Assembly: GCA_964247055.1 (NCBI GenBank)
Contig: OZ176054.1
Coordinates: 6,386,001-6,450,000, forward strand
DNA: 64,000 nucleotides
Source of the DNA: Paragordius varius
Lineage: Eukaryota; Animalia; Nematomorpha
Direction: 5' to 3'
Below are positions 14,878 to 63,094 of this stretch, piece by piece (the first letter of the stretch is position 1; each line of letters begins with the position of its first letter). Position numbers and translations under genes: made by a program. The notes beneath the pieces were generated by a model, which was not told the origin of the DNA, did not search any database, and was given only the letters and a program-made list of their open reading frames with translations.

Positions 14878-17800
14878 ATGTATTATTTGAAACGTGACAA
14901 AAAAGACGAAGAGTCGGGTATGTTTTGGTAAAATATATTAGGGCCTGGCTCCAATATGTTTTACAATATTGATAAAACCATGGTATTACAAGAGGTAAAG
15001 AAATTTTCTATATAAAGGCTCGAATATTTAATGAAACACCAATAAATGCAAAACGGTGCGCTTTGGTTTTAACCAAAATTCTCTATATCATTAATCAAGT
15101 ATAGTTAATATCCTTAATAATTAAGAATCAAACGATTGGTGTGCGGGAAGCGACGGAGTGCTTTTTTGCTACGACAAAGCTGTTTCAATCTAAAGATGTA
15201 ACTTTTAATTATAAATTGTAGAATTTATTAAGACGGCTAGTATATCTAGTTATTAAAGATATGGCACCATTAGCGCAAGATGTAATTATTGTTACGAGCA
15301 GGTTTGTGCTTTTATTTTATTTTTTTCATAGTTTGACCAAAGACATGACTGGAAAAGAAGATTTGTATCGAGGACCCGCTATAAGAACGCTATGTGCCAT
15401 AACTGATGTAAATATTTTTTTATCTGTGAATATTTAAATACATTGTGAAATTCCAGTTTTAATTTGGAAAAAATAAAAAATAAACTAAGTTGTTAATTTA
15501 AATCGTCGTAAATAGGGAAAAAGTATTTTTCTCATTATCATTAATAAGCTAAAAATCATTTTTACAGGCTAAATATAGATGGCCCCTTATAACTTGATAT
15601 AACCGCTGAATATAAGTCAAAACATCTTCATTTAAATCAAAAATAATGGATCTTATATGACACTAGTTTGCAACTGTTGGTGATTTTGCCAATAATTTTA
15701 ATTTATTTTTGTTTATTTCAAGGTCATAATATGCATATTTAATACCCCAAAATTAATTATATTTAAAAAACTTGAATTTTTAAGTAGGCCACTTAATTTC
15801 GATTATGAAATATATGTTAAATCTTTAGCCAACAATGATACAAGCTATTGAGCGATATATGAAACAAGCTTTGGTTGATAAAAATTACACGGTATCCAGC
15901 GCTGCTCTAACCTCTTCTATGGTAGTTTTTTGTTTATGTTTTCTGACACCAAATCGTTCATAACTATTACTATAATAAAAACTGAATATATATATATATA
16001 TATATATATATGGATAACTTAAAAAAGAAAAGATTTGTTTTAATATATAAATCCTGATTTTATGTGAACGATTGTCAAATATTGAAATGCACCTGTTTTT
16101 ATTATCTGTCTAACAAGATCATGGTCTATTTTAAAAAAATAATGAATTGTTGTCTTTATAATAAATTATTTGTTTTTTAGGTTTATTCTGTATATTTTAA
16201 ATTTTACCATAAAGTTTATACATTTTTTTCTATTTATAATTAATATAAAAATATTCATATAAAGATATTTTTTATTAGCATCTCTGTTGTAAGAGTGTTC
16301 ATGGTGTTGATATTGTTAAGAGATGGGTTAACGAAATTCAAGAAGCCGTAAATTCAGATAACAATATGGTTCAAGTAAGTTTACGATAATTATTCCATAC
16401 ATAATAGTTAAATTACTAAATAATTTTAAACTCTATTATATAGTTTATATTTTTGAATTAAATTAAATTTGACTATGATAAAAAAAATTCAAATAACTTT
16501 CATTTAATATCATGATTAATTCAATTTTCAAAGGGTTACAAACTATACTAACTTATAACACAGTATGTATTAATGGTTTATTTCACACTATAATTGGGAA
16601 ATTTGCAACACATTAGTGTATTAAAAAAGAAAAAATTTATTCAACATTTTGTTGTTTTTATACACTACTATTTTGAAAATCGCCCAACTATAGTGTAAAA
16701 TAAGCAGCCATTAAAATGTATACTGTATTTTTTTATATAAAAATATAAAAAAAGTTTGGGCATGTAAATTAAATAAAATAATGTTAACAATTATTTTTAT
16801 ATATTTTTCAGTATCAAGCCCTTGGATTATTGTACCAGGTTCGAAAGACGGATAAATTAGCCATTTCCAAAATATTCTCAAAATTCCACAAAGGATCTCT
16901 CAGATCACCCTACGCTTATATTTTATTGGTAATTTTTTTTTATTGAAAACTAACCAATTTAAGTTACCTTTTTTAACATTGGACAATACTGTTATGCATT
17001 TTGGTAAAAATTGTATACATAGGTTGAATGTTTTAAGTAAAAAAAACCCTTTTTACTAAATAATCTACCGTAAACTAAAAGATTTAACTTTAAAAAATAA
17101 ACCAGAGTTTTCGTTGACCTATTTTTCATTTGCCTATTAAGATCCTTAAATATGGAGTTGAGGGTTCTTTTATATTATACCCCCCTAATCATTTAAAAAA
17201 TGTAGCGAAGATTTACGCTTATATAAATCTTAAGTTGACCCTTTTTATAAAAAATGGGGAATTTATATTTTCTTAATTCTTTGCCCATTTGTAGATTCGA
17301 ATGACGTGCCAATTAATAATAGACGATGCCTATAACGGGTAAAATTTTTTATATACATAATTCTTAAATTATTTTAAGGACTTTTATAATTATTAAAATT
17401 TTTATGGGGGTTGCGTTTTATTTTTAAATTTTATAATGGAAATTGTTTACAATCTAAACATTTAATTAATTACTATGGATTAATATTTATATTGTTATTT
17501 TTTATTAAATTTTTTTATTGAATATTACCATAATAGTTTTGTGAATATTGGTCCATTTTACGAGTTCTTGGAATCCTGCTTGAGACATAAAACAGAATCA
17601 GTCGTATTCGAAGCCGCCTCATCCATAGTTGAATTGCACAGTGTTAAAGAGTATATTTTGAATTTATTTTTTTTATTTAAAAAAGTTCCTTAAACCTTTA
17701 TGCTATTTTATAGTGCCTTTAGTTAGGTAACTTATAGTTTACTAAAAACTCTTATTTTATGGTATTAATTTATCTAAATTTTGCTTAAATGTAGTAATTA

Positions 17801-20110
17801 TATTTAGTAATAAAAAAAGTAAAGTTGGAAAACTAAATAAAATATCTTGGGATATGCCAAAAATAAATGTGATATAGGGGCACATATAGGCTCTACATCT
17901 GAAAATACGGTTTACTTTCAAAATAAAAGATTCGTATAGTTTAAGTTGACGACGCTTTTCTATCAGATATTGAAAAATTTAAATTTAAAAAATAATATTT
18001 TTCATTATAAAATAACAATTTTAATCCATTGATTTTTAAATTGTGAGTAAATATAAAATTGAATGTGTTATCAATTCTCTATTACTTCTTATTTAACTAC
18101 CAAAAATAGATTAAATATCATGAATCAAGGCTTAATAAAAGAGTTATATGAAATATATTTTACCTTAATTTTTTTTATTTATACATATTCACCCTTTGTA
18201 TAATGCCTTATATTTTCACAACGCTATTATTAGGATAGCCCAAGCTATAATGTCACTCGGTTTGGGAGGTGGAGGAGGCAAGAAATCAAGTGGTGTCGGG
18301 GGCGGTGTTCAATCAGCCATTTCAGTTCTTCAATTATTTTGCGGTTCGGCTAACGCTGCCCTACGATTCGCTGCAGTCAAAACTTTGAATAAAGTAAGTT
18401 TTTTTGTGTTTTAGGATGTTAGGATTTTTTAAAATATGGATTATAGTTTTGGAATAAAAAATTGAAGATATACGGACAAAACGTAAAAAAGACATTTCTA
18501 AAAGACAACCATACTGTTTATATCTTGATTTTTTGAATATAACTTATTATTGTTTAACAACTAACTGTAAAGCATGAATATATATAGGTAATACAATCAA
18601 TCATGTATTTTACAATTGTAATTAAATGATATGTAAAAAAGTATGGTGCTCTTTTGAAAAAAATTTTTTTGTCTATATATTTTTACCTTTTGTCCGTATA
18701 ATATATATTTTTGGATATATACATATATAGTTTTTTTAATTTTTAATGACTGGTATTTCATGTTTATATTGTATAGAGACTTTTGGTTGCATTTTAGTTG
18801 TTTTATGATGACTGGGTGTTTAAAAAAAATAATTTTTTTATAATGATTAGATCTGAATTTAATTGGATCATTTTCGACGCAGTATACATAATTATATTAA
18901 CTTATATAGTATTTTTTTGTTAGACAAGAATTTAGATGATAACTCGTTTGAAAATAGATGCATTTTTTTAAACAAATACCCTATGTAAAAAATAATTTGG
19001 GTTATAGAAATGGTTTTTTAATCAATTTTTAAATTAATTATTTTGAAATTTCCCAGGTAGCTTTGTATGAACCCAATCTACTTACCAGCTGTAATGCAGA
19101 ACTTGAATCACTTATCACGGATTCGAACCGAACTGTTTCGACTCTTGCCATAACTACTCTGTTGAAAATAGGGTATCTTTCTTTAATTATTACATATAAA
19201 AAATTATAAGCATAAAGCGTAAAAAATATTTTTGAAGAGAGCAATACTTACTTGTTTAAACATTGATTATACCAATATAAAATATATAATAACATTTTGA
19301 AATATATAATTGCTTATTTTGTTTTCTATTACATCTCTTCCTAATTTTAACCCAAAACGATAAAATATATTTGAAAAAAAATAAATGTGTAAAAAGTATG
19401 GCTATTTTTTTAAAAAAATATTTATCTTTTTCACGTTTTCTTATAATATTCTAGTCTGTATATTCTATATTTTATACATTTTATGTTTTATAATTAATTA
19501 GTTCTGAATCATGTGTCGATCGATTAATGAAGCAAATTTCCACCTACATCAATGAGATCAGTGACCCGTTTCGTATTACCATAGTTGATGCCATAAGGTA
19601 AATTAGTTTTTAAGCAAATTTACATAGATTTTATTTAAATATACATTTTTTTATTTTGATAAAAAATTACATAAATTTAAACTATATTATTTGATTTAAC
19701 ATGAAAATAATTAGATTTACCCCTCAGTCATAATTAGGGTTTGGATATATAACCGTTTTTGTAGGACCGAAACCGCAAACATTTCTCCAGAACTGGTTTT
19801 GAAACCGGAACCACATGATACACGCTTTAAAACAATTTTTTTATTATTTTATTTAATTTTTAAACGTTAATCATATTAAATTATAGTTTTATATATTTTG
19901 TTAAAAGTGATAATATTTAATTCCAATATGGACTATTTATTACTTATCTAGTAAAAAATAGTGTTATAAAAAACCAGGACCGTATTAGTTACCCGAAAAA
20001 CCGCCTCAATTTATGGTTACTAAAATATTTAGGGCAAATAATAATTATATTGGTTTCAGATATATATTCAAAAAATGTTCCCATAAAAAATAATTATAAT
20101 TATATATAAT

Positions 20111-20141
<31 letters not shown>

Positions 20142-23100
20142 GTAGAACTCTATGTTTAAAATATCCACGGAAACATACGGTTATGCTAAATTTTTTGAGT
20201 ACAATGCTTAGAGATGAAGGAGGTTTTGAGTATAAACGCGCCTTGGTTAACACATTGGTTGCAATCATAAAGTATATCCCAGAAGCTAAAGAAACATGTA
20301 ACTAATTTATTTATTTTTATATTTACATGTTAATTTAAATGATGACAAAAGTTAAAAATGGGTAAGAATAAGATAGAGATTCATATTTTTTATACCAAGC
20401 GATTTTTACAATTACATTTAAATTAAAGGAAAAAAACATAAAAAGTAGCAGAGTTTGTAAAAAAAACCTAGTTAAAAAGCAATTATTCTTGTATTAAATA
20501 AATATATTTTGATCCCTATCTATTAGGTTGTAAAACATGAAATAAAATTTCAAAAAATTTAAATCCACTCCTTAAGGATAAATATTGAAGATATCTACAA
20601 AAAATGCAGTGGTTTCAAGGTAGGTTCTGCTTTTTCAACAAAAAAAAAATCTTATTTTTATCATTATTTTATTCTTTTTAGGTTTGGCTCACTTATGCGA
20701 ATTCATTGAAGATTGTGAACATGCCGTTTTAGCCGTAAAAATATTGCATTTGCTGGGACAGGAAGGCGTAAAAACCCCTCAACCTACGAAATATATTCGT
20801 TATATTTACAATCGATGCATACTTGAGTCCGCTCCTGTTAGAGCTGGTAACATACTTTTTTTAAAATTTGTTGCATAATATATAACGAAATATTAACATA
20901 TCAAGTAATTTTCGATTATTAACTCAAAGTTAATCTATTGGATTGATAAAAAATTTATCGATTATTAATGGTGCAACCGCTAAACATTCCACTTCCCTAC
21001 GGGCTATGGTTAGCAAATTTTTTCATTAAAATAAAAATTATTGTGTTAACAAAAAAAAATAATTTTTAAGTGCGAATGATAAACCCTATTTAAATAGTTT
21101 GCAAATGAAGGACCGTGATGCGAAAAAGCCAAATATTTTCTCGTTTTTAGATAGTATAACATATCTAATTTTTAATAAAAAGTGACTTGTTGCGAATAAA
21201 ATTTCATTCATACCATACACCTAAAATTAACCCTCAAACTATTCAAATTCACCCTTGGACAAAAATTTCACTCTGAATACTTCGCATCCACCCCCAAATA
21301 TATCCAAAAATATTGAAAAAAGGAAATTTTTTTCTAATATATACATAATGCAGAAAAAAAAATAATATCACTAATTAATAATTTATTTTTAGGGTGAATC
21401 ATATATATTTAAGGGCGAATTTGAGGTAATGGTATACAATTTTCAAAAACCTATTTATTTTAGCAGCAGTACAGACCCTCTCTTTTATTTATTTTATTCA
21501 TAAAAAAGGGGCCAGATAAAAGTAGCCCGCAATAGGTATCACCATTATAATAGATACTATCTTTCGCTAAATAAAATATATACTTTTGATGCATAAATGC
21601 GCAAAACAAAATTTAATTACCCTTTTAACCTTTTTTAATTTGCATTTATTTTTAGCTGCCGTGTCTGCCCTGTCCAAGTTTGCTTTGTATTGTGAGGATT
21701 TGCGTGAAAGTGTTCTAGTTTTATTGCTACGTTGTCAATCCATGGATATTGATGATGAGGTTCGAGACCGTGCAACTTATTACATTGCTCTCATACGCGG
21801 AGTTGGGGGCGAAAATAAACTTAATACCGGTACCAAAGATTTATACCATCAAGAAGGTTTAAAATTTTTCAAAATCATGGATAGCCCTAAAGTTGTCTTA
21901 ATAAAGTTTTGACATATAAATATTGGGTTAACTATCGGTGTTCGGAGATAAATTTGTAACTAGCATTTGGGGTGTATTTGCAATCTTTGTTGTAATGATC
22001 ATGAGACTGCCTAATCTTTATAATATATTTTATAGTATTTAAGAGAACTTTATTTTCTATTCGTTGGTCAGCGAAGGATTTATACCATCTAGAAGGTTTT
22101 ATTTTCCTTTTTGTTGTTAAATTCAACTGAAATCCCATAGAGAATTGTTAAAATTTATAGGATTTGATAAAGAAACGTTAATTATCGTTGATCAGCGAAG
22201 GATTTATACCATTTTTATCTCATCATTACTATCAGCAACCTGGGCGGGCAAGTTCATGTTAAAATTTTTAAGGGTCCAATTATATAAGACATTAAAATAT
22301 TCAGTTTATTTGTATCAGGACTTGTAAAGCTTTTACACTCACCTGATGGAAAAATTGCGTAGTTTCTAGGTTCTAACTCTGGCACTCCAACACACTCAGT
22401 GTGGAAGTCCGGCGCCCTATCTACTATACCATTACACCTTTTAATTATCCAAGTCTTTACCTTTAAATAAAATAAAACATTTTGATCCATATACATATTT
22501 ATTATATTTACTTTATCAGATTTAAACATATCACCGGCATGTTTGGAGCAATGCTTGTTGTCATATCTGGAACATCAAAGCCATGAAGATAAATCCAATG
22601 AAGAACCGTTTGATATATCGACAGTTCCACTTTTGGATGATTCATCTGCAACACAACTCATGGACGCTGAAAGTGAATTTGATGGTGGTCCATTTACTAC
22701 GAGCGCCTCAGAATATGCAGTAATAAAAGTTAAAATATACGAACTAAGTTATTTGTTTCAAACATATTTTATCCTTGATTATTGATTATGTAAAAATTAT
22801 TTATAAGGTATAGAGATGTTAATTTTGATAACCCAGCTATATATTTAAAAATCGTAATTTAAGGTATAGGTTATATGGCAAAAGTTTAAAAAAGTATGGC
22901 TGGCTCTCTGTTTAGTTAATGAAACTAAATTTTATTATCTTTTTTTCTTTATATCACCTATCCTATTTGTGTACGATTGTTAAATATAAAATTAATTTTG
23001 ATGAATTTACACATCTTTATATCTTTTACTATTGTCGACACCATATACTCGTTTATGCAAAGAACCCAAGATTAAAAATTGTTTTTTCAAAAAATATATT

Positions 23101-26100
23101 TGTCACTTACAGTAAATAATTAAATGAAGAGATAAAATATGTAAAAAATATTTTTTTCTCAAAAACGATTTTAATTCTTAATTTTGTTTATAAAATTTAC
23201 AATATATGAAATTGTTAAATATTTAAATTGATGATTATACCAATTATCTCTTTTACAATCGTTGTCATCTTATGGTTTTATATGAATAATTAAAATTCAA
23301 AAAAATTATTTTCTTAATATAAAAACCGTTTGTATTTAAATATATAATTTTTATTTTAACATACAGAGAGGTGGTCAATCAAAAGACACTGACCATAAAT
23401 TAACCATTGCAGATGTACAAAAGGAGGGCGAAATCAATGGTGAGGCCTATAGAAATGTCAATGATGTTGGATATGGTGGAGATTTTTCGAGAGAAGCCAT
23501 ATTCATGGGTAGGAGGAGATTGATTAAATTTTTTATTATATAGGGGTGTCAAACTTAAATGACTTGATGGGTCACCAAAATATATGGGCAATTACAAATA
23601 TTTTATTAGATTTTATACATGAGACTGCAAAAACCACTATTTTTTTACAATTTTTGCTAGTTTATTGCTGAAATTCGGCAACACTTATCGGAAAAGTTGT
23701 TTGATAAAAAATCTATTTGGATTGTATTTTAAATTCTCGCGGGCTGCAGAAATATTTTGGAGGGGAGCATGTTGGACACTCCTGTTTTAAGTTTGGAATC
23801 TTGGAATTTTCAATCTTTTTAACACAAAATATCAATAAAAAATTAAATATATATTTTTTTTCGATGGTTTTGTATTTGATTTAAATATTTTAAATTTATA
23901 TAATATATTTAACTATGCATTTTTCCCGTATTTTCAGTTATTATTGCTTTTTCTATTTCCATATGGTAATATTTAATTTATGAATAAATTATCTTCGTTT
24001 TAGCTTTTTTCTTTTATTGACTCATTATAACTGTAAATAATGAGCATTTTTATATTTCGTGTGTTAAAATATAGAAGAATTAAATAAAATTCCTGCTTTT
24101 GCTACGTTGGGAACGTTATTCAAATCCTGTTTGCCTGTTAAGTTAACCGAAGCCGAAACTGAATACACTGTTAGATGTATTAAACACATTTTTACCCATT
24201 ATGTTGTGTTTCAGGTTTGATTTAATTTTTTTATAAGATATTGGAACATTTTATATATGTCATTATATAATTTAACATTTATAAGTAATGACATTACATC
24301 GACATTTTGTAATTTATTTCGTGACAAATGTGGGGAAAACTCTGATGATTTTTTATTATTAAATATTTTTTAAAACCTTATTTGACAATGCCCAGATAAA
24401 TAAATTACAAAAAGTCAGTCACCTTTAATTATATAATATCCCATGTAAATACGTTTAAACATTTTTTTAATGTGTAATAATAATGTAAATATTTTATCAT
24501 TTTTATACAGTGAAATGCAAAAGGGTGAAAAATTTGTCCAATATATAAGCTGTCAGATGATTGATTAAATAAGTCGCCTAGGTAATTAGTTAAGTTATAT
24601 ACCTGACATATATAGGGAAAGAAAGCTCTCTACTTCATTTTTTGTGCAGTATCCAAAATAAAATAAAAATTTTGATTCTCATGTATAGTTTGGTGTCAAT
24701 ATTATATATTGAAACTATTGCATTTTCATAATTTTAACTTAATAAGTCTGTGTTTAAATTGTTTAAGTGCCCATGCTCTATCGCAAAATTATTTTCAAAT
24801 TGGTTCTATTTGGTGTTTTTTTAGTTTGATATCACAAACACATTACCGGATCAAATATTGGAGCATGTGAGTGTGGAAATGAACCCTTCTGACGAACAAT
24901 TTACCGTTACGAAACGGATTGCAGCTAAATTTGTACCACCTCCTGACTATGTTGCATCTGTCCAAGGTTCATAAAAATTAGCAAGAAAAAGTTTTTTAAT
25001 TTATTCTGAAAATTAGGTTTATTATGATTGAAAGAAGAGTTTACGTATATAGATTCTCAAAACAATATTAGCTGTTTATATGTTTAAATCTATTGTATAT
25101 CAAACTATATTTTGATTTCTAATAAAATGACTTTTACTTTTATGTTGTAAAATACTGATAAAAATAGTCTTTATTCTGCTTATGTTTTAATAGACGCTGG
25201 TAAAACTATGACAAAGGAAAAAGATGTTAAACGTAACATTGCATATACCTGTATACGGCTCCCTCAAGAAGAACTAACTGGTATAAAATATATTCATTTT
25301 AAATAAATTCATTTTGTTTCTTTCGATTTAAGAAAAAGTACCTAAGTTAAATTTAAGATTTTATGCATAGAAAAATTATATATATTTTTTTATATAATTT
25401 AGTGTCGTCAACTTTTACCAACGTTATGAAATTTAAGGTTAAGGATTATGACCCTTCGACTCATGAGGTTTCTGAAGTCGCTTACGATGATGAATATACG
25501 GTAAAAATATAAATTTATTAGATTATATTTTTACTTTTTATATAAAACCTTTTTTTTAATTTATTTAACATATAAAGCGGATAATCTAATTGGTGAAAGA
25601 TGTAGAAACAATTTAACAATGAATTTTAATTATCAAGAAATAAAGAATTTATATTTTTTATCAACAATAAAACTGATTAAAATTTATGCAAATTAAACGT
25701 TTTTAATGCATCATTTTAGCTGGAAGATTTGGAACTTAACGTTTGTGATAGCGTGAAAGCCATCAGTAAACACAACTTTTCAGTGGCATGGGAGGAGTTG
25801 GGCCCTGAAAATGAACTTGAAGATAATTTTATCCTTTCATCTGTTACAACTATACCGGGTATTTAATTGAAACATTTTTTTGGTTCCGATTATTATATAT
25901 TGATTTAATCAAACATTATATTTTGCATTATAATTCAAAATTATATATCTATAAACCTCTATTCGGTTATAAATTGTCAATATGTTATATATATCTTTTT
26001 AATCTAAGAATTCATTTTTGTTTTGCTATACAAAATTTTAACTCTTAATTAAATATATTTTTTAATTAGACGCTATTACAAAGCTGAAAGAATTTTTGGG

Positions 26101-27413
26101 TATGGCCCCCTGCGAATCGTCGGATGTCATATCGGATTCCAAAAATTTACACACCCTTTATTTGTCAGGTATCATTAAACGATAATTGTTTTCGTTTGAT
26201 TTTTTAAATTAACCGAAAAAATATTTTAATTACTTTTTACATTTTTTACGAATTATATGTCATTTCAGTTTTTGCACACTCACATTTATACCCTTTAACA
26301 ATATATTACGTTGTATGTATATATATTAATATAACAACAGATATCCTATATAATAAAAAGTTAAATTTTCGATTCTTAAAATATAACGACTGATATAAGA
26401 ATCGCATTACATCTATCACCTATTTAACTTTATTTGTAAGGGATCGGAACCTTGATGTTGCAGTTCAAAACAATTCCAACATTTTTTGAATTTTAAACAA
26501 TTTAACATCCTGTTTTACTATACCATTTGCACTTCAAGAATGTTCTTAAACACATTAAGTTGGTCCTTTAACACATTAAGTTGGTTTTTGAACACTTCAA
26601 GTTGGTCTTTAGGACCATAATTTTTTCATGTATTTTTTTATTTTATTATTTTTTGACCTGATTTTCTTTATTTTATATATTTGTTCATATAAAAGAAATT
26701 TTTTTATATCAAAACCACTTTTTTGTTTCAATCTAATTTTTATTAATTTAACAAAGTTAGTTCCTTATAATTGTTTTTAATGAAAAATTGTTATTAATAA
26801 CCCAAACATATATATTTTTAAATTATGTGTTAAATTTATAAATATCTAAAATAAATTTTAGGAAATTAATAAAGATATACGGTTTTTGAATGATAAATTG
26901 ATATATTAATTTAAAGTAAGTTATTAAATTAAGAAAATAGGTATAAAATGATAAAATAGATGAATGTTACACGATTTGATTTATAAAAGTTAACAAAACA
27001 AAAAAGTTAAAGGTCCAGCTTGAAATGTTCAAGGACACTCTTGAAGTGCTGGTATCTTTTTGGAATATTAAAGTATCTACTTTTAAATTTTTAGCGAAAA
27101 TTACCACTTATGATTTAATTTTACAAATTAAACCGGAACCGAAATTTAATCCGTGCCGACATCAAACACGGTTTGTTTTAAAGCACCACCGTTAATTTAC
27201 CACTATTGTCTGTCTAAATCCTTTTTTTCGTACAAAACGTTAAAAAAATTGCATTTTTTTAAAATAGGTGTGTACCGTGGAAATCATGATGTTTTGGCCC
27301 GTATAAAGATTGTCGCTATGACTCAACAAGGAAGTTCTGGTGTCACCATAAATATGGTGGTTCGTAGTTCTGACCCTACTGCAGCTGAAGTCCTCATTTC
27401 TGCCATGGGATAA
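14878..27413 (+). CDS. COPG: Coatomer subunit gamma (gamma-COP), 26 exons, 982 aa
   Basis: Exons 14878-14917, 14942-14994, 15018-15098, 15126-15197, 15222-15301, 15332-15407, 15829-15921, 16279-16374, 16812-16928, 17295-17338, 17537-17650, 18234-18393, 19057-19172, 19502-19597, 20146-20297, 20682-20846, 21656-21856, 22520-22719, 23367-23508, 24075-24214, 24825-24966, 25194-25280, 25403-25500, 25720-25858, 26070-26168 and 27268-27413 total 2949 nt in frame. Motifs [62 protein letters not shown] and FLGMAPCE. Confidence 0.97.
16561..16725. mobile_element. Small palindromic CAGTA-ended MITE (family F) in COPG intron 8; second copy about 43850-44022
   Basis: Near-complete inverted repeat, TA on the right flank, and a clearly homologous copy abutting an aminopeptidase acceptor site. 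Confidence 0.6.
18469..18700. mobile_element. Small MITE-like inverted repeat (TATACGGACAAAA termini) in COPG intron 12
   Basis: TATACGGACAAAACGTAAAAA at the left and TTTTTACCTTTTGTCCGTATA at the right. Confidence 0.5.
21211..21434. mobile_element. Family C element (TACCAT...ATGGTA termini, subterminal AATTCACCC repeats)
   Basis: Termini shared with families A and B. Related copies at 55774-56657 and one ending at 52060. Confidence 0.55.
22360..22438 (-). mobile_element. tRNA-derived SINE-like head (degenerate), antisense in COPG intron 17
   Basis: Minus strand has an A-box-like TGGTATAGTAG and a B-box-like GAGTTAGAACC with tRNA-like spacing; no intact cloverleaf. Confidence 0.35.
23543..23784. 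mobile_element. hAT-like MITE (GGGGTGTC...GGACACTCCTG) in COPG intron 19
   Basis: Ends and internal CGCGGGCTGCA motif are shared with other hAT MITE fragments in the window; TSD not recovered. Confidence 0.45.
26521..27054. mobile_element. Family B foldback/MITE in COPG intron 25 (internal segment inverted relative to the other copies)
   Basis: TACCATTTGCACTTCAAG left terminus, 21-bp units, degenerate right end. Confidence 0.7.
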
Positions 27414-27680
27414 TAATCACAAACCACATTTAATTTTTTATGATGCTTTGATTTGTAAACTTTTTACAGCTACTTTGACTTTTAATTTAATTTTTTGGTA
27501 AGTTTAATAATAAATTACTGATATTTGTATGTTTTTTCGCATATATATTGATTTTCAAGTTAATTAAACGGAGTAAATATAATTTTATGGAAAAAGAGGA
27601 TATATTATTAAAATAGCCTTGATAAATGGTGTTAAAGGTAGGGGCAGACGATCCGTTTTTTAGTCGTTTGGTTGGGGAAA

Positions 27681-30600
27681 ATGAAATATAATCACGCTTT
27701 ATTTGAAAAGCATAACAAGGTAGATTGGAAAGTTATACATTTTGGACAATTTTGTCAGTCGTCTTTTCAAAAGGGAATCATATTTATTCAGGAGGAATTA
27801 GACAATTCATATCATGATAAAATCCTCAAAATTCAGTAAAACCATTGTTTTATTTAGAAAATTTGTAGAACACTTTCAAACCGCTTATGCATATCCAGAT
27901 CCAAAATATAATTCTTTTATTGTTATTACCAGAGTATTTTTAATTAATTTCTAGGACTCTTTGTTTAATGAACCAATGTTTCATGATTATTTAATAAAAC
28001 ATGCTTTAAAGGTTTTATTTTTATATATCCAGTACAATGATTTGTGTATACCGAATTGGGATGATATTATAATGGCTATAAAATTTACCCTTAATATTCG
28101 ATTGCGTCCTAGATGGGTAAAGTATGGAGATTTTTACATTGGTATATTTTAAAATAATATAAAGTTGATCGTGATATTTTTAGTCAAAATCGCTTATATG
28201 GATTTAGTATTTATTTATGTGGTAAAAAATACAGATTTTGCATTGAAATTTGAAGAAAATCAAATGTGTTTAGAATATGGAATTTATACATTAAAACCCT
28301 ATAATTTTAAAGTAATATTTACCTAATTATAAAAGTTAAGCGATATAAATATAGATCCTTGTCTTATAAAATCTTTTAACACAGACTCGGACACATACAT
28401 AGATGCTAAAGATATACCTCATAAAATGTGTTATGTTTTGCCCAGGTAATATTATGTTAATAAAAAGTATGAAAAAGGGATATATTATCGGAATTTCTCA
28501 TCGTCTATATGAATCAAACATAACCAAACAAAAATGTATGTTTAAAACCTATGACGAATTAAAAACTTATTGGAAAAAAATGGTATTTTCTTAAACTCTA
28601 TTATAAAGCGTGGTCCGTTTATATCTAATTTTTAAATATTAAAAGCTTAAGCAAATTAAGTGTTAAACTGGTTTTCCATAATATAAGCTCCGCCGATAGG
28701 CCAATATTTCCAAATTATCTTTTATTGTTGGCACCTTTAGTTCCAAATAGTAAGCCCATTATTCCGAGACATTTTTGGCCACTTTTGCCTATTTTCGGTT
28801 CCTTTAAGTCCTTATGGGTAGCTATAAGCTTGGAATGAATATCGCGTTTTAACCTATTTTTTCCCGCGCACCAAAAACTTTGAAACAGTTAAACCACTTT
28901 TCGCTTCTCATATCTAATGTTGAATAACTTAATTATTGTCCATATGGATTTAATCACGTATAAAACTTTAATTTGTGATATATTATACCAAAATTTCAAA
29001 TAAAATTAAATCCTCTTAATTGTCACGTAATATATAATAACGGCTTATTGCTCCTTAAAAATAAACGAATAACTATATAGGATCATCGGCATACACATAT
29101 TTCAAGCTTTTGTACTAATTATGTAAATTTCATATATTCATTATTAAAGACTTTTTACTTAAGATGAGACCTTCCAATAATTGCTAAAGGATATCTCTGA
29201 AAAGTCTTTACCGTTGTTGATTAAGATTAACACATTTGTTGCAGCAATTATTTATATCTAGTTGTTACTTTATATTCCATAAATCAGTAGTTCTAAAATT
29301 TATAAACATATTTTTCTCATTGTAAGGAAATATAGCCATGAAGCATTGGGAAGATTATTTTAACAAAATAAACTATTTCAGTTGTAAAAAATTGTTTAAT
29401 CAAGCGGCTAATATAATAATTTAAATTTCATTTCATTGTAAACATCCATTTTCGCCAATATTTTAGCCGAGTCTAAATTTTTCAAGTACAAACATAAACT
29501 AATTCTTTTATATATTAAAATTACTGCATAAAGTAATAAAATAATATTGTATTTACAAGCGTGCCCCAAAACATATTAATTTCTTAATTAGTTATTTGCT
29601 AAATTATATAATTGCAAATCAGTATAATTACGATTTGGCTGCTGGAACAACATGTAATGATCAAGAGGACATCTTTTACGTTCATGTAAATTTTGGACGA
29701 TTCAACCCAACCGTATTTTGGTTTTATTTAATTTCCAATCAAAAACGCCTAATATTAAAAAACACAGTTTAATTTAAGGAAATATAACTTAAACACCGGC
29801 TTAAATTTTTTGCAAATATCAATTGTAACCGTTATTTTTGCTATGCGATAATTTGATTGATAATGAAATAAATGGTACCAGAAATTTTAAACCAGATTTT
29901 CCTAAAAATTTGTCGTAATCATACAAAGTATTGTTAGGCCAGTATCTTTTTTTAACACAACTATAGTATTTTTTGGATCTAATGAAAAAGTTAATTAAAC
30001 ATAAACTTAGCGTACGGATTTCTAAGCACTTAAGATTTATTTATTGGGGCATCAAATGAATTGTAAATATAAAATAAAATACGAATCTAAAAATTGATGA
30101 ATTAGCTACCCCTCAATATGTGTTCATTCAAGACCCATGACAGTTATACCGAAAAAAATAAGTGAATGCAATTCTACAGCCACAGTGCTATGCAATATGT
30201 TTGAACAGGATGTTAAAAGAATTTTATCAATCCTTTCTGATCAAATTGAATGTGATGGGGTATTTTTATCCAAATATATTTATAATTGTAATAACATCAA
30301 CCGAAAAAATGTAATATTTTATTGACTAATAAAAATAATTGATAATTTCACTATCTTTTTCTGAGGAGAGCATATACCAAATATAGCCGATAATTTAAAA
30401 TTCAATAATATTTCTTAAGCATAAATACCAATATTTCATAATGTTTCTTAATTAAAATGTAACATAATTTCAGAATTCGCCCTTGTTGAAAATTCAGAAA
30501 TACGCATTTTCTAAACAATTAACAACAATTGACAGTAAAAGTGAGATTGATCATTCGCCAATATATTCACAAATATCAAGCGATATGAAATTAATCTCGA

Positions 30601-33395
30601 AATCGCCTATCACACTGACCTCGACGACTGCAGAGAAACTAAAATATTGTCCAATCTTTAAGCAACAACAACAACAAATGTCAGTATTAGAAAGTGAAAA
30701 TGGTGATAACAAAATCAAAGTTGTGGAAAGAATAATACCAACATTCCAACCCAAAGCCAAGCCTGAATCAATACATATCAAAGAGAAGTTGAATACTGAT
30801 CCCTCAAAAAATATTGTTGTAAATAAGGATTCAATAAAAGATAATAAAGTTACACAGCAAATCAAACTTTCAAAAAATGATTTGATGGCAAAACTAAAAA
30901 ATATTAGCCAGGAATGGAACCCAAAATCTTCTCAGTCCACTAAAATGGCAAAAACCAAATGTTCAAAAAAAGTTCTCAAAACGGATGATTCAATCATTTC
31001 AAAAACTGTATGAAATTTATATTTTTCTGGAATTTTGTCTTTGATTATTATTAATATTATTTTTAAAGTTATGTTATTATTTATGAAACAATCCTAAAAT
31101 ATTGGTAAAAATGATGAAGTTTATTTATGTCTATTCTACTCTTATTTAATTTTATCAAGGAACAGGAAAAATCCATTTTGAATGAATCAATTTTATTGGC
31201 CAAAAACATAGATGAAAGTGGTTACGTGTCGTTTTATGAACCTAGTATCCTTGATTCTACTCAAACCGCTATAGATATCGACACAAGTTTGATTGCAAAA
31301 ACTAAAGCAAACCCTCAAAAGCGGAACGAAAAATTGTCACAAACTCCTTTAAACAGTGGTATTCTAAATGTGACAAAATTAATAGAATTGGGCCATTTTG
31401 AATTGGTGAGCATATTTAAAATAATAATTTAGATTTAATTAAGCCAATCGATTATTATATATATGTTTACTTTTACTAAATATTCATATATGATCGCCTT
31501 ATGAAATACGTAATTTATATAGATTTGAGAGTTTAGATTTAAATTGGCGACGTATTTAATATGTAAACTGTCAAAACATTGTTAAAGTTTAAATATCAAT
31601 GTATCTTAAATGAGTTATATAAAGTTTTCCCAACAATATTATAACCAGGGGTGGCCGAAGGTCGAACGCGAGATTTTAAAACGTGACCCCTTGAAAATTT
31701 TTAAAAAAATGCAAAAAATATTTTGCATATATTATTTCTCCACAAAATCATAATTATTTTTCCTAATTTATTTTTATTTTGCGTTTAAAAAAATTTACTT
31801 GTTAAATTTATATTGATTAAGTAAATTTATTATTTTATTAATATTTGTGATATCGAAAATATTTATTTAGCAAAAAACCAAAAACAGGTATCCTTTATAT
31901 TTATATTTTAGTATGAAATTTAAGCCAGAAAAATGGTAAAATATATCGTTATAGAAATGAATGGGAAAAAGACTGTTTTTTTATAATTAAATGATAAATA
32001 TACTTGTCTGATATTTAAATCCACCTTGGCTTTGCCTAAAACAGCAAATGTCCAAGGAAACTACGCTTCACATGAAATATCAAAAATACAATTCAGATAT
32101 TCTCAAATTAAAAATCAAGCTATTGAAAGAGCAAAATATTCAGAAATACTGCATTGTATATGCAGCAAAATTTTAAAAATCCAAATTGCAAGTTACAAAA
32201 TATCACAAATCCTAATAAAAAACAACAAATCTTTTATGACAGAGAAATTAAAACGAATCTATATTAAAGCTTTTAACGTGCTGCTCACCAATTATAAAGA
32301 CAAAAAGAATATTATGGAATCTATAAAATGCTTAAAAACATTATGGGGAAAGGTGATGGTCATTATTAAAATCTTACCAAAATATTACATATTTTTAAAA
32401 GCAAAATTTTAGAGGCCAAATAGAAAACTGATTCAAATTACTGTTTTTTAATTGTTTTAATGTACATATCGCATCCCAAAGCAGGATCAAGAAGTGATTT
32501 AGATCTTTCACTGTAAAATAGATGATTTATAGTAAAATTTGTCTTGATCGTTCTGTAAATGCAGCACGACATAACCATCTTACATCTGTATTAATCAGTT
32601 AGTTCACTATGTCAACACCGATTCCTTTTATAAAAACTGCGGCGCGAAACTCTTTACGATTTGCTGGAATTTACTATCTTGTAGCATATGTCCATTATTT
32701 ATAACCTGCAGTAATCCATAAAACCTGGTAAATTATAATATTTGCCAAAAGCTATAAAGCCATTTGTTACTCAATCATCTAAAATCCGTCACAAGATTGA
32801 CAGTTAATTATCGATAGTAAAATCAATAAATTGAATATATAAACGTTTTAGTAATTGCACTGATTGTGGCAAGATGTCTTCTGAATCAACATTATTATCG
32901 TATTTTGATAAAATAAAAAATTATTCAAAATAATTATTTTTTATTATATATATTCTAAAATGGCCTCTCCTAGTCACCCCAATAGATAACTTGAGACATA
33001 TATTTGCACCATTTGTGTTGAAGTGTAATACTTTATATTCATATGTGGCAGCGTGAAATTTTCTCCCAATAAAGTCGCTCGCAGGAAAAAAAGGTTGACC
33101 ACCCCTGATTATAACATAAATTATCGCTTGAATGTCTATGGATAACGAAATGTTTTACCTTTTTTGTCTAGCTGCAACCATATAATTTATAATTATAATG
33201 TAACATTTTAGTAATATTAATTATAATAATAACCGATAATTAACACAAATTATAATATACCGAAAATTTTGTTTGTAGTTGAACAAGGTCCCAATAACAA
33301 CTCTCAAACAATGGTTGAAATCAAAAGGAGTAAAAGGATACACCAAGTTCAGTAAACAACAAGCAATAGATAAAATAATTGCCGATTCTAAATGA
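27681..33395 (+). CDS. C18orf63: C18orf63 homolog (DUF4708 domain plus C-terminal SAP-like helix motif), 13 exons, about 629 aa; start codon tentative
   Basis: Exons 27681-27835, 27858-27933, 27955-28011, 28033-28141, 28165-28206, 28235-28311, 28336-28445, 28468-28582, 29623-29720, 30106-30259, 30474-31007, 31160-31405 and 33279-33395 total 1890 nt in frame. RLRPRWVKYG, CYVLPSMKKGYII, FKTYDELKTYWKKMYNY, FCYPSIC and TLKQWLKSKGV match recalled C18orf63 motifs (RLAPAWNRTG, CYVLPSMKMGQII, FTYPLSC). Confidence 0.85.
28615..29500 (-). mobile_element. Decayed LINE RT fragment, antisense in C18orf63 intron 8
   Basis: KYVYADD at about 29085-29105, an upstream GLILS motif, and a downstream GTK-GA motif resembling jockey/CR1-like post-RT sequence; many stops. 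Confidence 0.55.
31646..33107 (+). mobile_element. Internally deleted hAT transposon (GTF2IRD2/SPIN/Charlie-like transposase remnant) in the last intron of C18orf63
   Basis: TIR CAGGGGTGG(C/T)C. Perfect 8-bp TSD ATTATAAC at 31638-31645 and 33108-33115. Internal NEWEKD..LNDKYTCLI..STLALPK (BED-like) and ASYKISQILIKNNKSF (ORF 32026-32412). Confidence 0.85.
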
Positions 33396-37372: not shown

Positions 37373-37902
37373 TTAAGCGTTATATCGTGTTTTGGAGCTA
37401 TTCGAATTATGTCCAAAAATTTTAAACCCTAAAAATTATCTTGTTATCACAGGAGAACTAGATCACATAAGTTTATTAGTGGAAGGTTTTGGATAAAACA
37501 CGTCATCTTCACAAAAAAGCAATGATGGGTTAAAGTGTGAATAATGAATTTCGTAATTATAAAAATTGCATAAATGATTAACACATGCCTTTTCACTATT
37601 TTTCCGCGATGACATATTGGAGTAGTATATCATAGAGCTCAATAGTGTAAATAAACTACTGTTTTTAAATTTAATTTAGCCAAAACTATATTATCAAACA
37701 TAATTCTCCTGTATTAGATAAATTGTATTTTACAGTTTTATACTGGAGTCTCTAATTGGGATATTTCCAGAACACGATTGATATAAACAGTTGAATTTAA
37801 AATCACTAAATATCATTTCGCAGATAATATGCAGTCTTAAAGATTACTATAATTATTATTTTTTAACTATATTATTATATATCCTATTATAAGCGATATT
37901 AA

Positions 37903-39022: not shown

Positions 39023-39332
39023 TGAAATGCAGCAAAATTGGCTGCAGGTTTAAGACTAGTTTTATATTATTTGTATTATGCGAAAGGATCGATCAAATTA
39101 TTAAATTAGATCTAATAGTTTTTAAGCTATTCAAATATAAAATTGTTTTAAAATATATTTTAGTTAACAATCATAAAAATTCTTTTGGTGGTTTTAAGAT
39201 TGGGAAAAAATAGCAATTAGTATCAGCTTTTTAATAAAACAACAATGATTTGATATAAATATAATATTTTCATTTATATCAAAATTTGCGCTAATAGTTT
39301 AAAATAAATTATATTTAAAAATTAAAACATTT

Positions 39333-39624
39333 ATGTCACATTATTTTGCACGAACAAATCTTTGTGCTGAGGTTTATAAATATTGTTTACTTAGGAAAAA
39401 GTTATCGTTGACAAATGTTACGCGAAAAATGACTGTAGTCGCACCATTTGTAAGAATGAAATAGCAAATTACAATATTTGTAAAAAGTTTTGGGTATATT
39501 TACATGCTTATTTTAGCTTTATGTCATCAAGAAACGTATGGCCGATAATATGACTCCGATTCCGCCACCTGAGGAAATTAATAATTATAAAAATCTATAT
39601 TTAAATAAAGTTTTGAATAAATGA
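39333..39624 (+). CDS. CHCHD7: Twin CX9C mitochondrial intermembrane-space protein CHCHD7 (COX23-like), 81 aa, 3 exons
   Basis: Exons 39333-39371, 39395-39493 and 39517-39624, with two 23-nt GT-AG introns. Protein MSHYFARTNLCAEEKVIVDKCYAKNDCSRTICKNEIANYNICKKFWLYVIKKRMADNMTPIPPPEEINNYKIYILNKVLNK has two exact CX9C motifs and the CHCHD7-like CKKFW..V...R....P..P. Confidence 0.85.
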
Positions 39625-42600
39625 TTATTATTAAAAGAATATTTATTTTTTTTGGACGCTATGTTATATATATTTAACATTTATCTATCATAATAACCTA
39701 AATTTTGCACTAACATCTATTTTTGGCATATATTGATTGAATTAATATCCAAAAAAATTTATAATTTTACAAGCGCAAGCAATCTTGAAAGTTTATTTTT
39801 AGTATGTCATTTTTAACAAAAAAAGCCAATGAGAGAGGAATTATACATAAATTAAAATCACGCATGTGCAAAGATTTTAAAATTATCTGATAACTCATTT
39901 GCCTTAAAAAAGATTATTGCAGTGGTACTACTGAACAACTTGCCGCATGAGGCCCTTAAACTTAATTTTTCTGGCCACAGATTTTTATACTTTCATATGT
40001 ATTGTGTAAAGGTACATTAGCGATATATATCGCAGTTTACAGTGCTTTATCATGAATATATTAGTGACAAAAACAAGTATATTGTTATTTTGTATAATGT
40101 GATAAATAATTCAAATAATTTTGTGTAAGCCAGCCAAGTATCCTGTATTAATTTAAATTCTGTACTCATTATGGGACCCGCGAAATATTTTTGATGGTAT
40201 GACTGTTCTATCATGAAAAAATTATGCAGTCACAATTTAAATTTCGACCCAATTTTTTATATCCAAAAATAGGAAATCAATGTTTCTGCTTTGCCAACGA
40301 GATATACCCATTTACTTTTACCTCTAAAGCGTAATTTTGTAAGCCGGAGCGATTTTAAATTCTAATATCATAAAAAGTGCTAAGATATTGGGCAAATAAA
40401 GGAACATGCCCTTTTTAGCCTTTTGAACGGGTAATCCAAAATATGATCATCTCAAATATTTTTGCCGTTGTTTTTTTATTTGGCTGATACAACAGCCAAA
40501 AATATATTATGGTTAAATATGTAAAATATTAACTCTGAAAAGCTTTGAAATATATTTTAGCAGCATATTTTATATAATTATAATTACAGCTTTTTGTTTC
40601 AATCGGCATTTTGGAGCTATACCGATTTCACACCCTAGGAAGAAAACTAAAAAATATATTTTCTTTTAGAATAGGAAAATAATACAACTCTCATAATAGT
40701 AGGCTATAGGGTGTTCATCGACCGCTTTTAAAAAATATATGGGCAGTAAAACTTTTTTTTTGTATTTAATAAATACCTGTTAAATCAAACAGAACACAAT
40801 AATTTTTTCTACATCGTTGCCAATTAAATATACCACAAAATTCGTTAATATATCAATTATGTTTAGATTTTGTGCGCATTACTTGCAAATTATAAATTTC
40901 CATATATTTTGCGAGCCGCATGTTGGACACATCTGATTTACAAGTTAGAGATATGGGGGGGTTCAATAGGCCAAATAATTACAAAAGTTAAAAAATGAAG
41001 TGTTAATGAATTATGCTTTCGTGGTCTGTAATGTTGGGGTGTTCAACAATGACATCGAGGGCAATATAACTACTATTTATTGTATCAATTTTTGCCAAAT
41101 CGTTGCCAATTAATCGAACTTTTTAGGAATATGAATGGTAAGATTTTATAAGCAATTTTTGAAAGTTCTGGTATATTTATTTTTTATTTCCCAAATTTTT
41201 CGCGGTTTGCACATAACACGGAAAGCGCGTGTTGACCCATGTAATGCAAAATGATTTTTAAAATATATATTTTATTTGATCTTATTATTATGATATTTCA
41301 AAATCAAAATGATGTTGGTTTTTCATATTTAGTATATGTGCCCTTATAATTTTAAGTTTACAAATTTGTTAAAATACTCTTATGTTTTACAGTTAACGCC
41401 CATAGGCCGAGGTTACGCGATAAAAAATTTTAAAAATAGTGCTATATATCATGATTAAAATTAGTTTTACTAAAATTTTAAATTGAATTTTACATCAAAT
41501 TTATCATCATGAAGGAGCATCGCATCATTCAAAAATGAAATTGACGTATATAAATATTATAAAAATCACTTTATATAAATCGATATCGCTAAAGATTCTA
41601 TAGCGCATTAGACTTTTTATTAAATTTTATTTAATCTCCATTTTTTAATGTCATAATAACTGCTTGCACTAAAATAAGAATTATTTTTACATCCGAATTC
41701 TGTAGTGCTAGACATATTTAGCGGCATTAAATTTCAAAAAAAGATTTTTTTAATATTAATGCGAACTTTATTACCTCTTCCGGTTTACTGCATTATACCA
41801 TAAAATACCCCTTAAAAATGTTGCTAAATTTCGATGTGAAATCCAAATTAAAGGATTTTTCTACAAATTAATTTCTATGATAAAATATAGGACTTTTTAC
41901 ATTTTTTATCGCACAACCTTGAACTTTTTGACTTAATTATGCAGTGGCATAATTTATTAATTTTATCAAAGCTAAACTTTTAACGCATGTCCAAAAATTT
42001 ATGATAGAAATCAACATCACATTGACTTTCAAATCAAGCACACAAATTACTTTAATAATGTGCCGGAGCGAATATTTAATTTTGGCTTATTCTAAATATA
42101 TCATATTTTAAGTTGGATAACCCACTTGAATAATTGAATTATAATTAATAAGCCCACAACACTAGAATTCGGGCCCCACAGTGTTGTAATAGGGATAAAC
42201 TTAAGCCACTGCAGATATAAATTATACATTTTTATTGCATGAAACATTTTAGTTAATTTGATTTAATATGAATTATTTAACACCCGCGCTCAATATTGAA
42301 AGTATAAAATGATATAGATAAAAGATAAAATATTAAAAATTTACATATAACAAAAGCATTTAATGTTATATTATTCTAGATTTTGAACAGAAAAATTTTG
42401 TTGTTACCAAATTATGTCTTATTTTATGAGTTTTATTTTTTAACTATATATTATCATGATATATAATTTATTCTTATAATATATAAGTTATCCTTATATT
42501 GATTGTAAAAGAAAATTATCCAACACACATAAAATAAGCTTTTTTAGAGGTATTAGTAACGCACCTGTATAATATTTAATTAGATGATGACGCCTAATAC

Positions 42601-42853
42601 TTTAAATCGAGAAATATTTTCAATATAGATAAATAGATAGATATCAGGTAGTGAAAACGAATAAATATTTCTGTGTTTTTATTTGTTTAAGCGAGTTTTT
42701 GCAAAATATTCATTGAAATAACAAAACAAAACTAATAAAATAGCTAAATAGCTATAATTTTAAGAATTTTGTATATCTTAGAAATATATATACATATAAA
42801 ACGTTTTGTTTTACTATATATCATAAAAGGCCATAATTCATTTGTTTTATACC

Positions 42854-45800
42854 ATGTTTTTTGTAACATCCTTGATTCTGTATGGTGTAATTGGTAAATT
42901 TTGTCTAATAATTTTTAGCCATTTTTGCTGAAATACCTAAGGAGCCTACCATACACTTATCTTCTAGCGGTTCAGCCGATAATAAACTCCTCCTTCAAGG
43001 ATTTAATGATGAAGAAAATTTCCCGTTTTTTAGCGGTATAAATTGGTCATCTAAAGAAAATTCGGTATTTCAACTTTTATATGCAAAACTTTTTCCTACT
43101 TATTCTTTTGTATTGCAAAAACAATTATATAATAATAATAATATTTTATAGCTTTTTTTGATCAATAGGTAATCAACCGGTTATCTTTTTTAATTTTTAT
43201 TGAATAAAGAAATGATTATGTCTTATATATTAGTTTATTTAATCCAAATATTTTACAAAAAATTACAAGATATATCATTTATTTTCTTTTTAAGTTAATA
43301 AATAACGTCCTCGAGGGTTAAGGTCATTGTCTTATCTAACTAAAACGAAATAAATAATTTTTGAGCCAGGGATGTCTTAAACGCTTTTTTCGGTACGCAA
43401 AAATTAAGTTCTTTAAAAAATGTACCAAAAAATAAAAAATTGGATTTCAATCAAAAATGTACGATTATTTAAAAGATGTATAATCCAAAATCGGGTTGTA
43501 AATATAAATAAAAAAACTAAAAATTTTCAAAGCAGCCGTATATTTGTGTTGGACCCCTGGTAAATTTCCATCATAACCCATTTTAACACTTTACATATTA
43601 AATAAAAAATTAAACAATAAGATCACATTATATCTTTTTTTATATATAGAGAAATCGATGTTCAGATCCAAAGCTAGTTCAACTAAGGAAATTAATGAGG
43701 GATGAAAATATAACTGGTTATTTGATAAAGGGAGATGCGCATGAGGTTTTTAATCAAAATTTCCCTTAATTAAAATTTATATACAATCTATATAATGCCA
43801 TTTTTTGCCATATATATATATATATGTGTGTATAATATATTCTTATATTACGCATAAATGGTTGCTTATTTCGCACTATAGTTGGGCAATTGCAACACAG
43901 TAGTGTATGTGAAGAAAACAAAATATTGAATAAACAAGTTTTCCTTTCTTTTTTCGATACACTACTGTGTTGCTAACTGCCAAACTATTGTGCGAAATAA
44001 GCAACTATTAAAATGCATACTGTATTATAGTGGGAATATATGAATGAATGCACAAACCGTAGAAAATATATATCGGGATTCACAGGATCACTTGGTATTA
44101 TATATATGAAATGATTTGACCCTGAACATTTCCAACAAAAATGTTTAGTTTTTAAACATTACCTATAATTCTCGCAATTTTTAAAAAACTTTGTCTAGAT
44201 TTAAGATAATACATAAAAATATATTATCTTCCCACAAAACTTTAATTGATAGTTTATAGCCCAAAGAGCAAAAATTTTTAGGGTGTTATTCAAGGGTGAA
44301 TTCCCCAATCTCACTGCTAAAATTAATTAAATTAAAATCATAGCTGTAGCGATTATTAAATATCAAATGACTACGCTAATATTCAATTTCCGTAACGTAT
44401 TACCGGTACACTAACCTAATCATATGATTATACTTTCATTTATAATAATAATTTAGTATTATATTTTTGGCACGTGCTTACCATGTTTGTTTATCCAAAA
44501 TGGTTATATTTTAAACAAATACACGTTTTTTTTTAAAATACGTATCTATTAACCCTTTATTTTCAATATATTTTGACTGTTTAAGGTTCTCTTTTAATAA
44601 CGGAAAACGTGGCGGTGCTGTTTACAGATGGTCGTTATCAGTTACAAGCTAAATATGAATTAGATAGCAGGTGTTGGATTGTGGATAAAAATTGTAAGAT
44701 ATTATCGTAATTTTATTTTTCGTTTTATTTTGACACTTCATTACCTTTTCACTTTTTTGTCCTAGTTTACCTTTTGGTGTCGTTTTATATGCCAGAGCGC
44801 CATTTTGTGTAGTAAATTATATTTAGAAACTTATTTTATTAAAATTTAATTGTCCATTGTTAGCATTATTAGATATAAGAGCTTAATCTTTTACAGTTTT
44901 GTGGCTTCTAGAGTCAAAAATTGGGAAAGCTCAATTGAAACCAACAGCTGATATTAAAAACCAAATATATTTATTTGCTGGTAATATTGGCCTAAAATTT
45001 TCTTAAAGTTAATTATTTTTATTTTCTAATCATATTGTGCATTTATTTGCCTGTGGCATTATTTAATAAAATTTATAGAATTAAAATGGCGGCAAAGTTT
45101 GAGATGAGGATAATTTACAATTTTACATTTTATTAAAATTTTGTATAATGCGCCTAGGCTAAAGAAAGAATTAAATTTGACTTAATCCCTTAATTTAAAA
45201 TTTTTAATACAAGTTTCAAAACGCTCTGGAATATAAAACTACCCCAAAAGGTAATGGAGAGTTAAAGGAATATCACAAACATAATCATACTCTAAATTTA
45301 TTAATGTTTGGACAACTTATATAATTTATAATTATAACATTTGAATTTTTTAAAGCAAGCTATTTAACGGTGCAATATATAGCATATCAAGTTATATCGA
45401 GCTAATATCTTTAAACATCGTTATATACATTTTATGTTTGTATATTATCCTTTATTCAAAATAAAACAATAAAATTTATTATGCAATTCAATATTTGTTG
45501 ATCTTCCGATATTCTAGTTAAAATATTATTTGGATATATATTGGTTCTAATCTGTTTGACTTTTCGATTTGACTTTACACCCAATAGGATGCGACAACAT
45601 TGATTATATATTTATCTACTTAATTTCTGGGAAGGAGGGGAGCTTTGGTGCTTAAACCTGTTAATAACGTTTTATTATAATTCATGACCTTTGTTATACT
45701 TTTATATTTAAATTTTTACAAATCGTGTTGATTTTTTTTTAAAATACGATCTTTTTTATAAATAACGCTAAAAGAAGCGTTGGGCGCTCGAATTTCCCAC

Positions 45801-63057: not shown

Positions 63058-63094
<37 letters not shown>

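Follow-up and report, generated by a model that had tools for sequence, protein, structure and literature searches.

Putative 21-30 nt introns confined to gene 5' ends in a stretch of the repeat-rich genome of the hairworm Paragordius varius

Introns shorter than 30 nucleotides (nt) were, to our knowledge, long thought not to exist in animals. Tiny introns are familiar from ciliates, with lengths of about 20-33 nt in Paramecium and 15-16 nt in Stentor; ciliate introns are, as far as we know, uniformly tiny and show no positional restriction. Among animals, introns below 30 nt have been reported only in myxobolid Myxozoa and in Dicyema (D. japonicum), whose genomes are compact (Hadjez et al. 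2026, PMC13644364), and small introns at gene 5' ends are described in Schistosoma mansoni (Protasio et al. 2012, PMC3254664). As a general rule, the longest intron of a gene is its first (Bradnam and Korf 2008, PMC2518113). Two genome papers on hairworms (Nematomorpha) make no mention of introns; the genome of Gordionus montsenyensis has a guanine plus cytosine (GC) content of 26.93%, 63.8% repeats and a BUSCO score of 71.6%. The subject of the present analysis is a 64,000-nt (64-kb) stretch of the genome of the hairworm Paragordius varius (GCA_964247055.1, contig OZ176054.1, positions 6,386,001 to 6,450,000; hereafter the window, numbered from its first base), the GC content of which is 23-32% throughout. 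It contains 15 segments of 21-30 nt that begin with GT, end with AG and lie near the start codons of four genes. These segments are very probably U2-type GT-AG spliceosomal introns, and we are highly confident that they are real introns with a 5' polarity. Splicing is deduced from genomic DNA, reading frame and homology, the RNA available under the same species label (runs X6-X8) holding a divergent transcript of one of the genes, that for the coatomer gamma subunit (COPG).

With the introns of myxobolids and Dicyema the segments share a length below 30 nt in an animal (medians there are 22-27 nt), GT-AG borders, an AT-rich parasite as owner, reduced motifs ('GTa' ... 'AG'), conserved positions and the placing of short introns beside short neighbours (PMC13644364), and all 15 belong to the ultra-short class in being at most 30 nt long with reduced motifs. 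They differ in that tiny introns predominate in the compact genomes of myxobolids and Dicyema, whereas here introns of 58-1350 nt occur in the same gene within a repeat-rich genome, and in that the tiny class is here restricted to the first intron positions. Ultra-short introns, the majority in compact genomes as treated by Hadjez et al. (2026), are a minority in the window, where about 45 resolved introns of 58 nt or more stand against 15 tiny ones. The arrangement resembles that of S. mansoni, likewise a parasite with a repeat-rich genome, in which small introns are typically found at the 5' end, followed by large ones, and are missed by standard transcript assemblers; Schistosoma, however, belongs to the flatworm phylum, and the class described here measures 21-30 nt. 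The schistosome minimum is reportedly about 26 nt, most of the small introns there being longer than 30 nt. The likeness to ciliates lies in the size range, in the weak signals and in the fact that most cases of retention would show themselves through a shifted frame or a stop, the difference in that lengths divisible by three are not depleted here (7/15). A dependence of length on position is common to the window and to the general rule for first introns (PMC2518113), and its direction is reversed, the first introns being the shortest. What is new here is the combination of introns of myxozoan size with a polarity of schistosome type, found in a repeat-rich genome that belongs to a new phylum. 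A preliminary description of the window had listed known lineages with tiny introns, dicyemids among them, but missed both the Myxozoa (PMC13644364) and the 5' precedent of S. mansoni (PMC3254664).

The COPG gene (14878..27413, + strand) was modelled over its full length, with 24 introns. P0133, a full-length homologue of 864 residues, served as reference for tblastn and for resolving the junctions, and homologues gave Adaptin_N matches. Residues 1-133 of P0133 align over 14878-15407, and the alignment is broken by gaps of 8-10 residues exactly on the tiny segments. Intron 1 (14918-14941, 24 nt, phase 1) would place an in-frame stop in the protein if retained, and the homologue alignment has a gap exactly here. 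Introns 2 (14995-15017, 23 nt), 3 (15099-15125, 27 nt) and 4 (15198-15221, 24 nt) are all of phase 0, the third appearing in the tblastn alignment as a nine-residue gap with a stop and the fourth as a further gap, while intron 5 (15302-15331, 30 nt, phase 2), which is in frame and free of stops, corresponds to a gap of 10 residues relative to the homologues. The introns that follow measure 421, 357, 437, 366, 198, 583, 663, 329, 548 and 384 nt (introns 6-15) and 809, ~663, ~1346, 610, 226, 122, 219, 211 and ~1099 nt (introns 16-24). Five tiny introns thus come first, followed by 19 of 122 to ~1350 nt, with no tiny intron after a long one. Exon 12 (18234-18315) carries an apparent glycine-rich insertion that is absent from P0133; its acceptor could lie at 18233 or further in (18274-18290), and the insertion may be partly intron.

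The next gene downstream (27681..32412, + strand) is C18orf63-like, as read from matches to DUF4708 and from the frame, and has seven tiny introns followed by introns of ~1035, 385, 210, 135 and 600 nt. The frame needs the removal of intron 1 (27836-27857, 22 nt), where an unspliced reading stops at once, and of intron 4 (28142-28164, 23 nt), and an in-frame stop would result from retention of intron 2 (27934-27954, 21 nt) or intron 6 (28312-28335, 24 nt). Intron 5 (28207-28234, 28 nt) is also needed for the frame, which would be kept as well by alternatives of 25, 34 and 37 nt, as it would at intron 2 by a 33-nt alternative with its donor at 27922. The exons that flank intron 7 (28446-28467, 22 nt) match positions 162-197 and 199-229 of the DUF4708 profile, which are contiguous; with single exons as Pfam queries, a DUF4708 match was returned by only two of eight. 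Intron 3 (28012-28032, 21 nt) is in frame and contains no stop, but is T-rich like the other tiny introns (GC 0.19) and is probably a real intron, even though the frame does not require its removal.

Two further genes on the + strand were recognised by sequence reading. One is a twin-CX9C gene of about 80 codons (39333..39624), both introns of which are tiny (39372-39394 and 39494-39516, 23 nt each) and would shift the frame if retained; the first C-x9-C motif is present only once intron 1 has been removed. Its earlier assignment to CHCHD7 found no match in Pfam or PDB with single-exon queries, and the name CHCHD7-like, as used here, reflects the twin CX9C pattern alone. The other is an aminopeptidase P (XPNPEP2-like) gene (42854..~58022), with exon matches to Creatinase_N_2, Peptidase_M24 and Peptidase_M24_C and at least 14 introns, of which part of the junctions were resolved. 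Its intron 1 (42894-42918, 25 nt) links a hydrophobic first exon of 13 codons to an exon 2 that has no in-frame ATG and a stop before it; the 25-nt option keeps the frame and a 32-nt option does not. Intron 2 measures 585 nt, and the later resolved introns ~284, ~490, 70 and ~116 nt or are kilobase-sized.

All 15 segments are present at exactly the lengths first reported for them, 23-24 nt being the commonest, and they extend from the first base of COPG intron 1 (14918) to the last base of aminopeptidase intron 1 (42918). GT and AG ends would be expected by chance at a rate of ~0.002 per arbitrary segment and are found in 15 of 15. When 2000 random ATGs of the window, on both strands and with the real genes included, were given the same number of GT..AG introns of 20-32 nt, a spliced open frame of equal length was reached by 0.1% in the C18orf63 case and by 0.35% in the COPG case. 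Seven of the lengths are divisible by three, and five of these seven segments contain an in-frame stop. That nearly all of the segments are required to keep the frames open, as had been proposed, holds for the 13 of 15 whose retention would shift the frame or bring in a stop, and not for C18orf63 intron 3, in frame and without a stop. Restoration of the frame is based on homology or profile for the five COPG introns and C18orf63 intron 7, and on the frame only for eight others, C18orf63 intron 3 being optional.

Additional evidence comes from a second individual, of which one DNA contig (run X4) spans 14830-15478 without a gap at the tiny introns. In the COPG 5' region eight differences separate the two sequences, two in COPG intron 1 and three in intron 2, all off the splice sites, the remaining three being exonic and all at synonymous third positions (binomial P=0.024). 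The mean GC content is 0.18 for the tiny introns and 0.37 for the COPG 5' exons. The tiny introns are thus AT-richer than the exons and free to evolve, while the flanking exons change only synonymously. An AT-rich COPG fragment with 80% identity and identical exon borders (P0003) was found by protein search on a 1.4-kb Logan contig; further protein searches for the COPG 5' region of related hairworms returned only distant homologues, which lack intron 5. In the RNA runs X6-X8 the COPG transcript is ~82% identical in the two best-conserved exons (15832-15921 and 18316-18395) and has a higher GC content. The species label of these runs seems to cover a different organism, which may be a cryptic species or a host, unless the sample was mislabelled.

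A comparison of intron positions with the COPG loci of three other animals, two from ENA assemblies (L001 and L003) and one from Adineta steineri (L002), bears on the age of the tiny introns. Counterparts at the same codon and in the same phase were found for intron 2 (61 nt in L003), intron 3 (>2.2 kb in L001 and ~225 nt in L003), intron 4 (416 nt in L001, ~54 nt in L003 and ~900 nt in A. steineri) and intron 5 (516 nt in L001, at AG|T), and none for intron 1 in L003. Since they share codon and phase with longer introns elsewhere, at least introns 2-5 of COPG are, on this comparison of sequences, to be regarded as old introns that have since shrunk and not as new insertions. The comparison of orthologous positions suggested in the preliminary description thus gave counterparts for four of the five COPG introns and none for the first in L003.

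The restriction of the tiny introns to gene 5' ends is real in this window. They begin 39-765 nt from their own ATG, in agreement with the limit of about 0.8 kb given previously, and occupy the first positions of their genes: 5 of 24 introns in COPG, 6-7 of 11-12 in C18orf63 and 1 of at least 14 in the aminopeptidase gene. In these three genes, which have introns of both classes, every tiny intron precedes every long one and positions 1-7 at most are taken by tiny introns. With introns ordered at random within genes, the joint probability over the three genes is P = 2e-9; with the tiny introns of each gene treated as one freely placed block, it is P = 6e-4, and the confinement to 5' ends that had been claimed therefore has a probability of ~6e-4 or lower under chance in the window. 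The further claim that no tiny intron follows a long one holds throughout COPG and, for the other genes, in as much of each as was resolved. Also upheld was a lower limit of 58 nt for all other resolved introns, the shortest being Sox intron 1 (58 nt), followed by aminopeptidase introns of 70 and ~116 nt and the COPG range from 122 to ~1350 nt. Lengths of 31-57 nt are unrepresented among the introns found in the 64-kb window, a window-wide scan for additional tiny introns gave no convincing candidate within any gene body, and the tiny introns are supported as a discrete size class here. The change to long introns takes place at different distances from the ATG: it is reached at +211 in the aminopeptidase gene and at ~+217 in Sox, and further on in COPG (+530) and C18orf63 (+902).

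The splice signals of the two classes are largely alike. Donors of the form GTA(A/T)nT are equally weak in both: 12 of 15 tiny introns start with GTA and 2 of 15 have G at +5, the corresponding figures for the long introns being 16 and 3 of 17; the weakness of the tiny-intron donors noted earlier is therefore correct but not distinctive. The frequent AAG endings, by contrast, do set the tiny class apart, with A at position -3 in 5/15 tiny and 0/17 long introns (P=0.015). Its acceptors show a weak preference for T only, the T-tract being somewhat weaker than in the long class, and the tolerance of A at -3 and this weaker tract were the only signal differences found. The coexistence of two splicing regimes in one transcript, as put forward in the preliminary description, is not established by these signals. 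Where a branch point would be looked for, A makes up about half of positions -6 to -10 of each tiny intron, and no fixed position stands out among the 15.

The repeat content of the COPG locus was estimated from word depth in the DNA of the other individual, as 64 kb is too short for a comparison of the window with itself to be informative. Against a baseline of ~100, DNA of high copy number (word depth 865-3423) is found 80-480 nt upstream of the COPG ATG. The compared stretch includes nine long COPG introns, and high-copy sequence also occurs in three of them (at 16400-16799, 18400-18799 and 19200-19599), so that the view of the long introns as transposon-filled is supported for these three and not for the other six. 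Over these segments, which belong to COPG introns 8, 12 and 13/14, and at 14400-14799, just upstream of the gene start, word depth rises to as much as 86,000 against the same baseline.

Taken as a whole, these results are probably best explained by ordinary introns that have shrunk, that are served by a single spliceosome and that may owe their polarity to insertion and selection. Both classes would be removed by the same spliceosome, as suggested by the donor signal they have in common. The tiny introns would be recognised across the intron, the choice of the 3' AG being guided by closeness to the branch site and not by a pyrimidine tract, and a choice of AG by proximity would explain the tolerance of AAG. 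As to the cause of the polarity, a tentative proposal, leading but short of probable, is that introns near the promoter are kept at a minimum by selection and that those further downstream lengthen through insertions. In a repeat-rich genome introns would lengthen by insertion unless selection prevents it; within a few hundred bases of the transcript start, selection would hold introns at the smallest size that the spliceosome can handle, and once one long intron is tolerated, later introns would be free to grow. This account is favoured because the donor signals are identical and the switch point is variable.

Several observations weigh against this explanation and its parts. For an account by insertion and selection, high-copy DNA would not be looked for so close upstream of the COPG ATG, nor would six of the nine long COPG introns compared be free of high-copy sequence. 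All 19 downstream COPG introns measure at least 122 nt, and the empty range of 31-57 nt looks more like a mechanistic discontinuity than like a balance of drift and selection. As to the segments themselves, C18orf63 intron 3 is optional and the ends of introns 2 and 5 of that gene are ambiguous from the frame, the tiny introns of the aminopeptidase and CHCHD7-like genes are without homology support, and the COPG RNA under the same species label is only ~82% identical in two exons.

One alternative, somewhat unlikely in our judgement, is that the polarity is mechanistic: introns of 21-30 nt would be spliceable only close to the promoter, and tiny introns further downstream would have been lost or expanded. 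Possible causes are slow early elongation by RNA polymerase II, the Ser5-phosphorylated state of its tail, or assistance that weak donors receive from the cap-binding complex. The position of every tiny intron within 765 nt of the ATG, the absence of downstream COPG introns under 122 nt (0/19) and the empty 31-57 nt range are in keeping with such a mechanism, and the AAG endings (5/15 versus 0/17) suggest a different choice of 3' splice site. The donor signals, on the other hand, are alike in both classes, and with a switch point that varies from +211 to +902 nt no fixed distance is evident, a finding that also weighs against a fixed cap-proximal distance as a form of the cap-proximal cause put forward in the preliminary description. 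Help from the cap-binding complex, moreover, applies as far as is known to the first intron only and not to seven in a row. A promoter domain from which transposons are excluded, another of the causes proposed there, is contradicted by the high-copy DNA upstream of COPG. In a more specific form, a spliceosome might work in two discrete ranges, one of ~21-30 nt and one that starts at 58 nt. The short range would be available only in the first few hundred bases of the transcript, owing to a dependence on early transcription coupled to the promoter (cap, state of the polymerase tail or slow elongation). Such position-dependent competence is favoured by the empty 31-57 nt range and by the lack of tiny introns downstream, and we consider it an unlikely reading; if true, it would be a property of splicing undescribed in any organism.

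It is highly improbable that the tiny introns are real and their 5' restriction a sampling effect of the few genes in the window: only three genes here have both size classes and the aminopeptidase gene is resolved in part, but the joint probability is 6e-4 or lower and COPG, conserved over its whole length, is fully modelled. That the segments are not removed from RNA at all, and represent assembly errors, pseudogene lesions, sites of translational bypass or somatically eliminated DNA, can almost be dismissed, for although two of the 15 can be read through in frame and splicing is deduced from DNA only, GT..AG ends are present in every one of the 15, the sites of four of them coincide precisely with ancient introns, the independent DNA contig of the other individual has segments of equal length (evidence against assembly error, and without a sign of any segment-free form of the DNA), and the exon differences are exclusively synonymous, which argues against a pseudogene.

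The genes on the + strand of the window are arranged in the order SLC35F (3' part), Sox-like, COPG, C18orf63/DUF4708, twin-CX9C and aminopeptidase P. Only 268 nt (27414-27680) separate the COPG stop from the C18orf63 start, though introns exceed 1 kb in this genome, and this spacer must either hold both the COPG 3' end and the C18orf63 promoter or lie within a region in which the two genes are co-transcribed. On the - strand, the 3' part of a calcineurin-like phosphoesterase gene is found at 62773-63575, with a visible intron of ~400 nt that fits the long introns in 3' gene parts, and a cysteine-rich open frame without a Pfam match at 59662-59787. Arrays of 21-nt tandem repeats, of two families, occur as inverted pairs 0.4-1.1 kb apart (13491-13591/13999-14059, 33551-33665/34081-34219 and 35473-35643/36753-36965; also 1-86); these pairs look like foldback-type mobile elements with subterminal repeats, and a related 21-nt array is located inside the last COPG intron (~26980-27190). 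An Rfam scan of the whole window gave no match that reached any gathering score, and a search of 501 nt gave a sub-threshold match to the hammerhead ribozyme HH9 (26.7 bits, gathering score 52, E=1.7e-4) at 9626-9677 on the + strand, within Sox intron 3.

The hairworms would represent a third animal lineage with introns shorter than 30 nt. Since the genome that contains the tiny introns is large and rich in repeats, compaction alone cannot account for introns of this size. The occurrence of tiny and long introns in one transcript would offer a natural experiment on the minimum size of introns and on the effects of position on splicing and intron evolution. Standard gene finders and read aligners work with a minimum intron size of ~20-40 nt, and gene 5' ends of the type described here would be mis-modelled by them. 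If so, part of the low BUSCO values of hairworms, such as the 71.6% of Gordionus, might reflect annotation damage and not gene loss.

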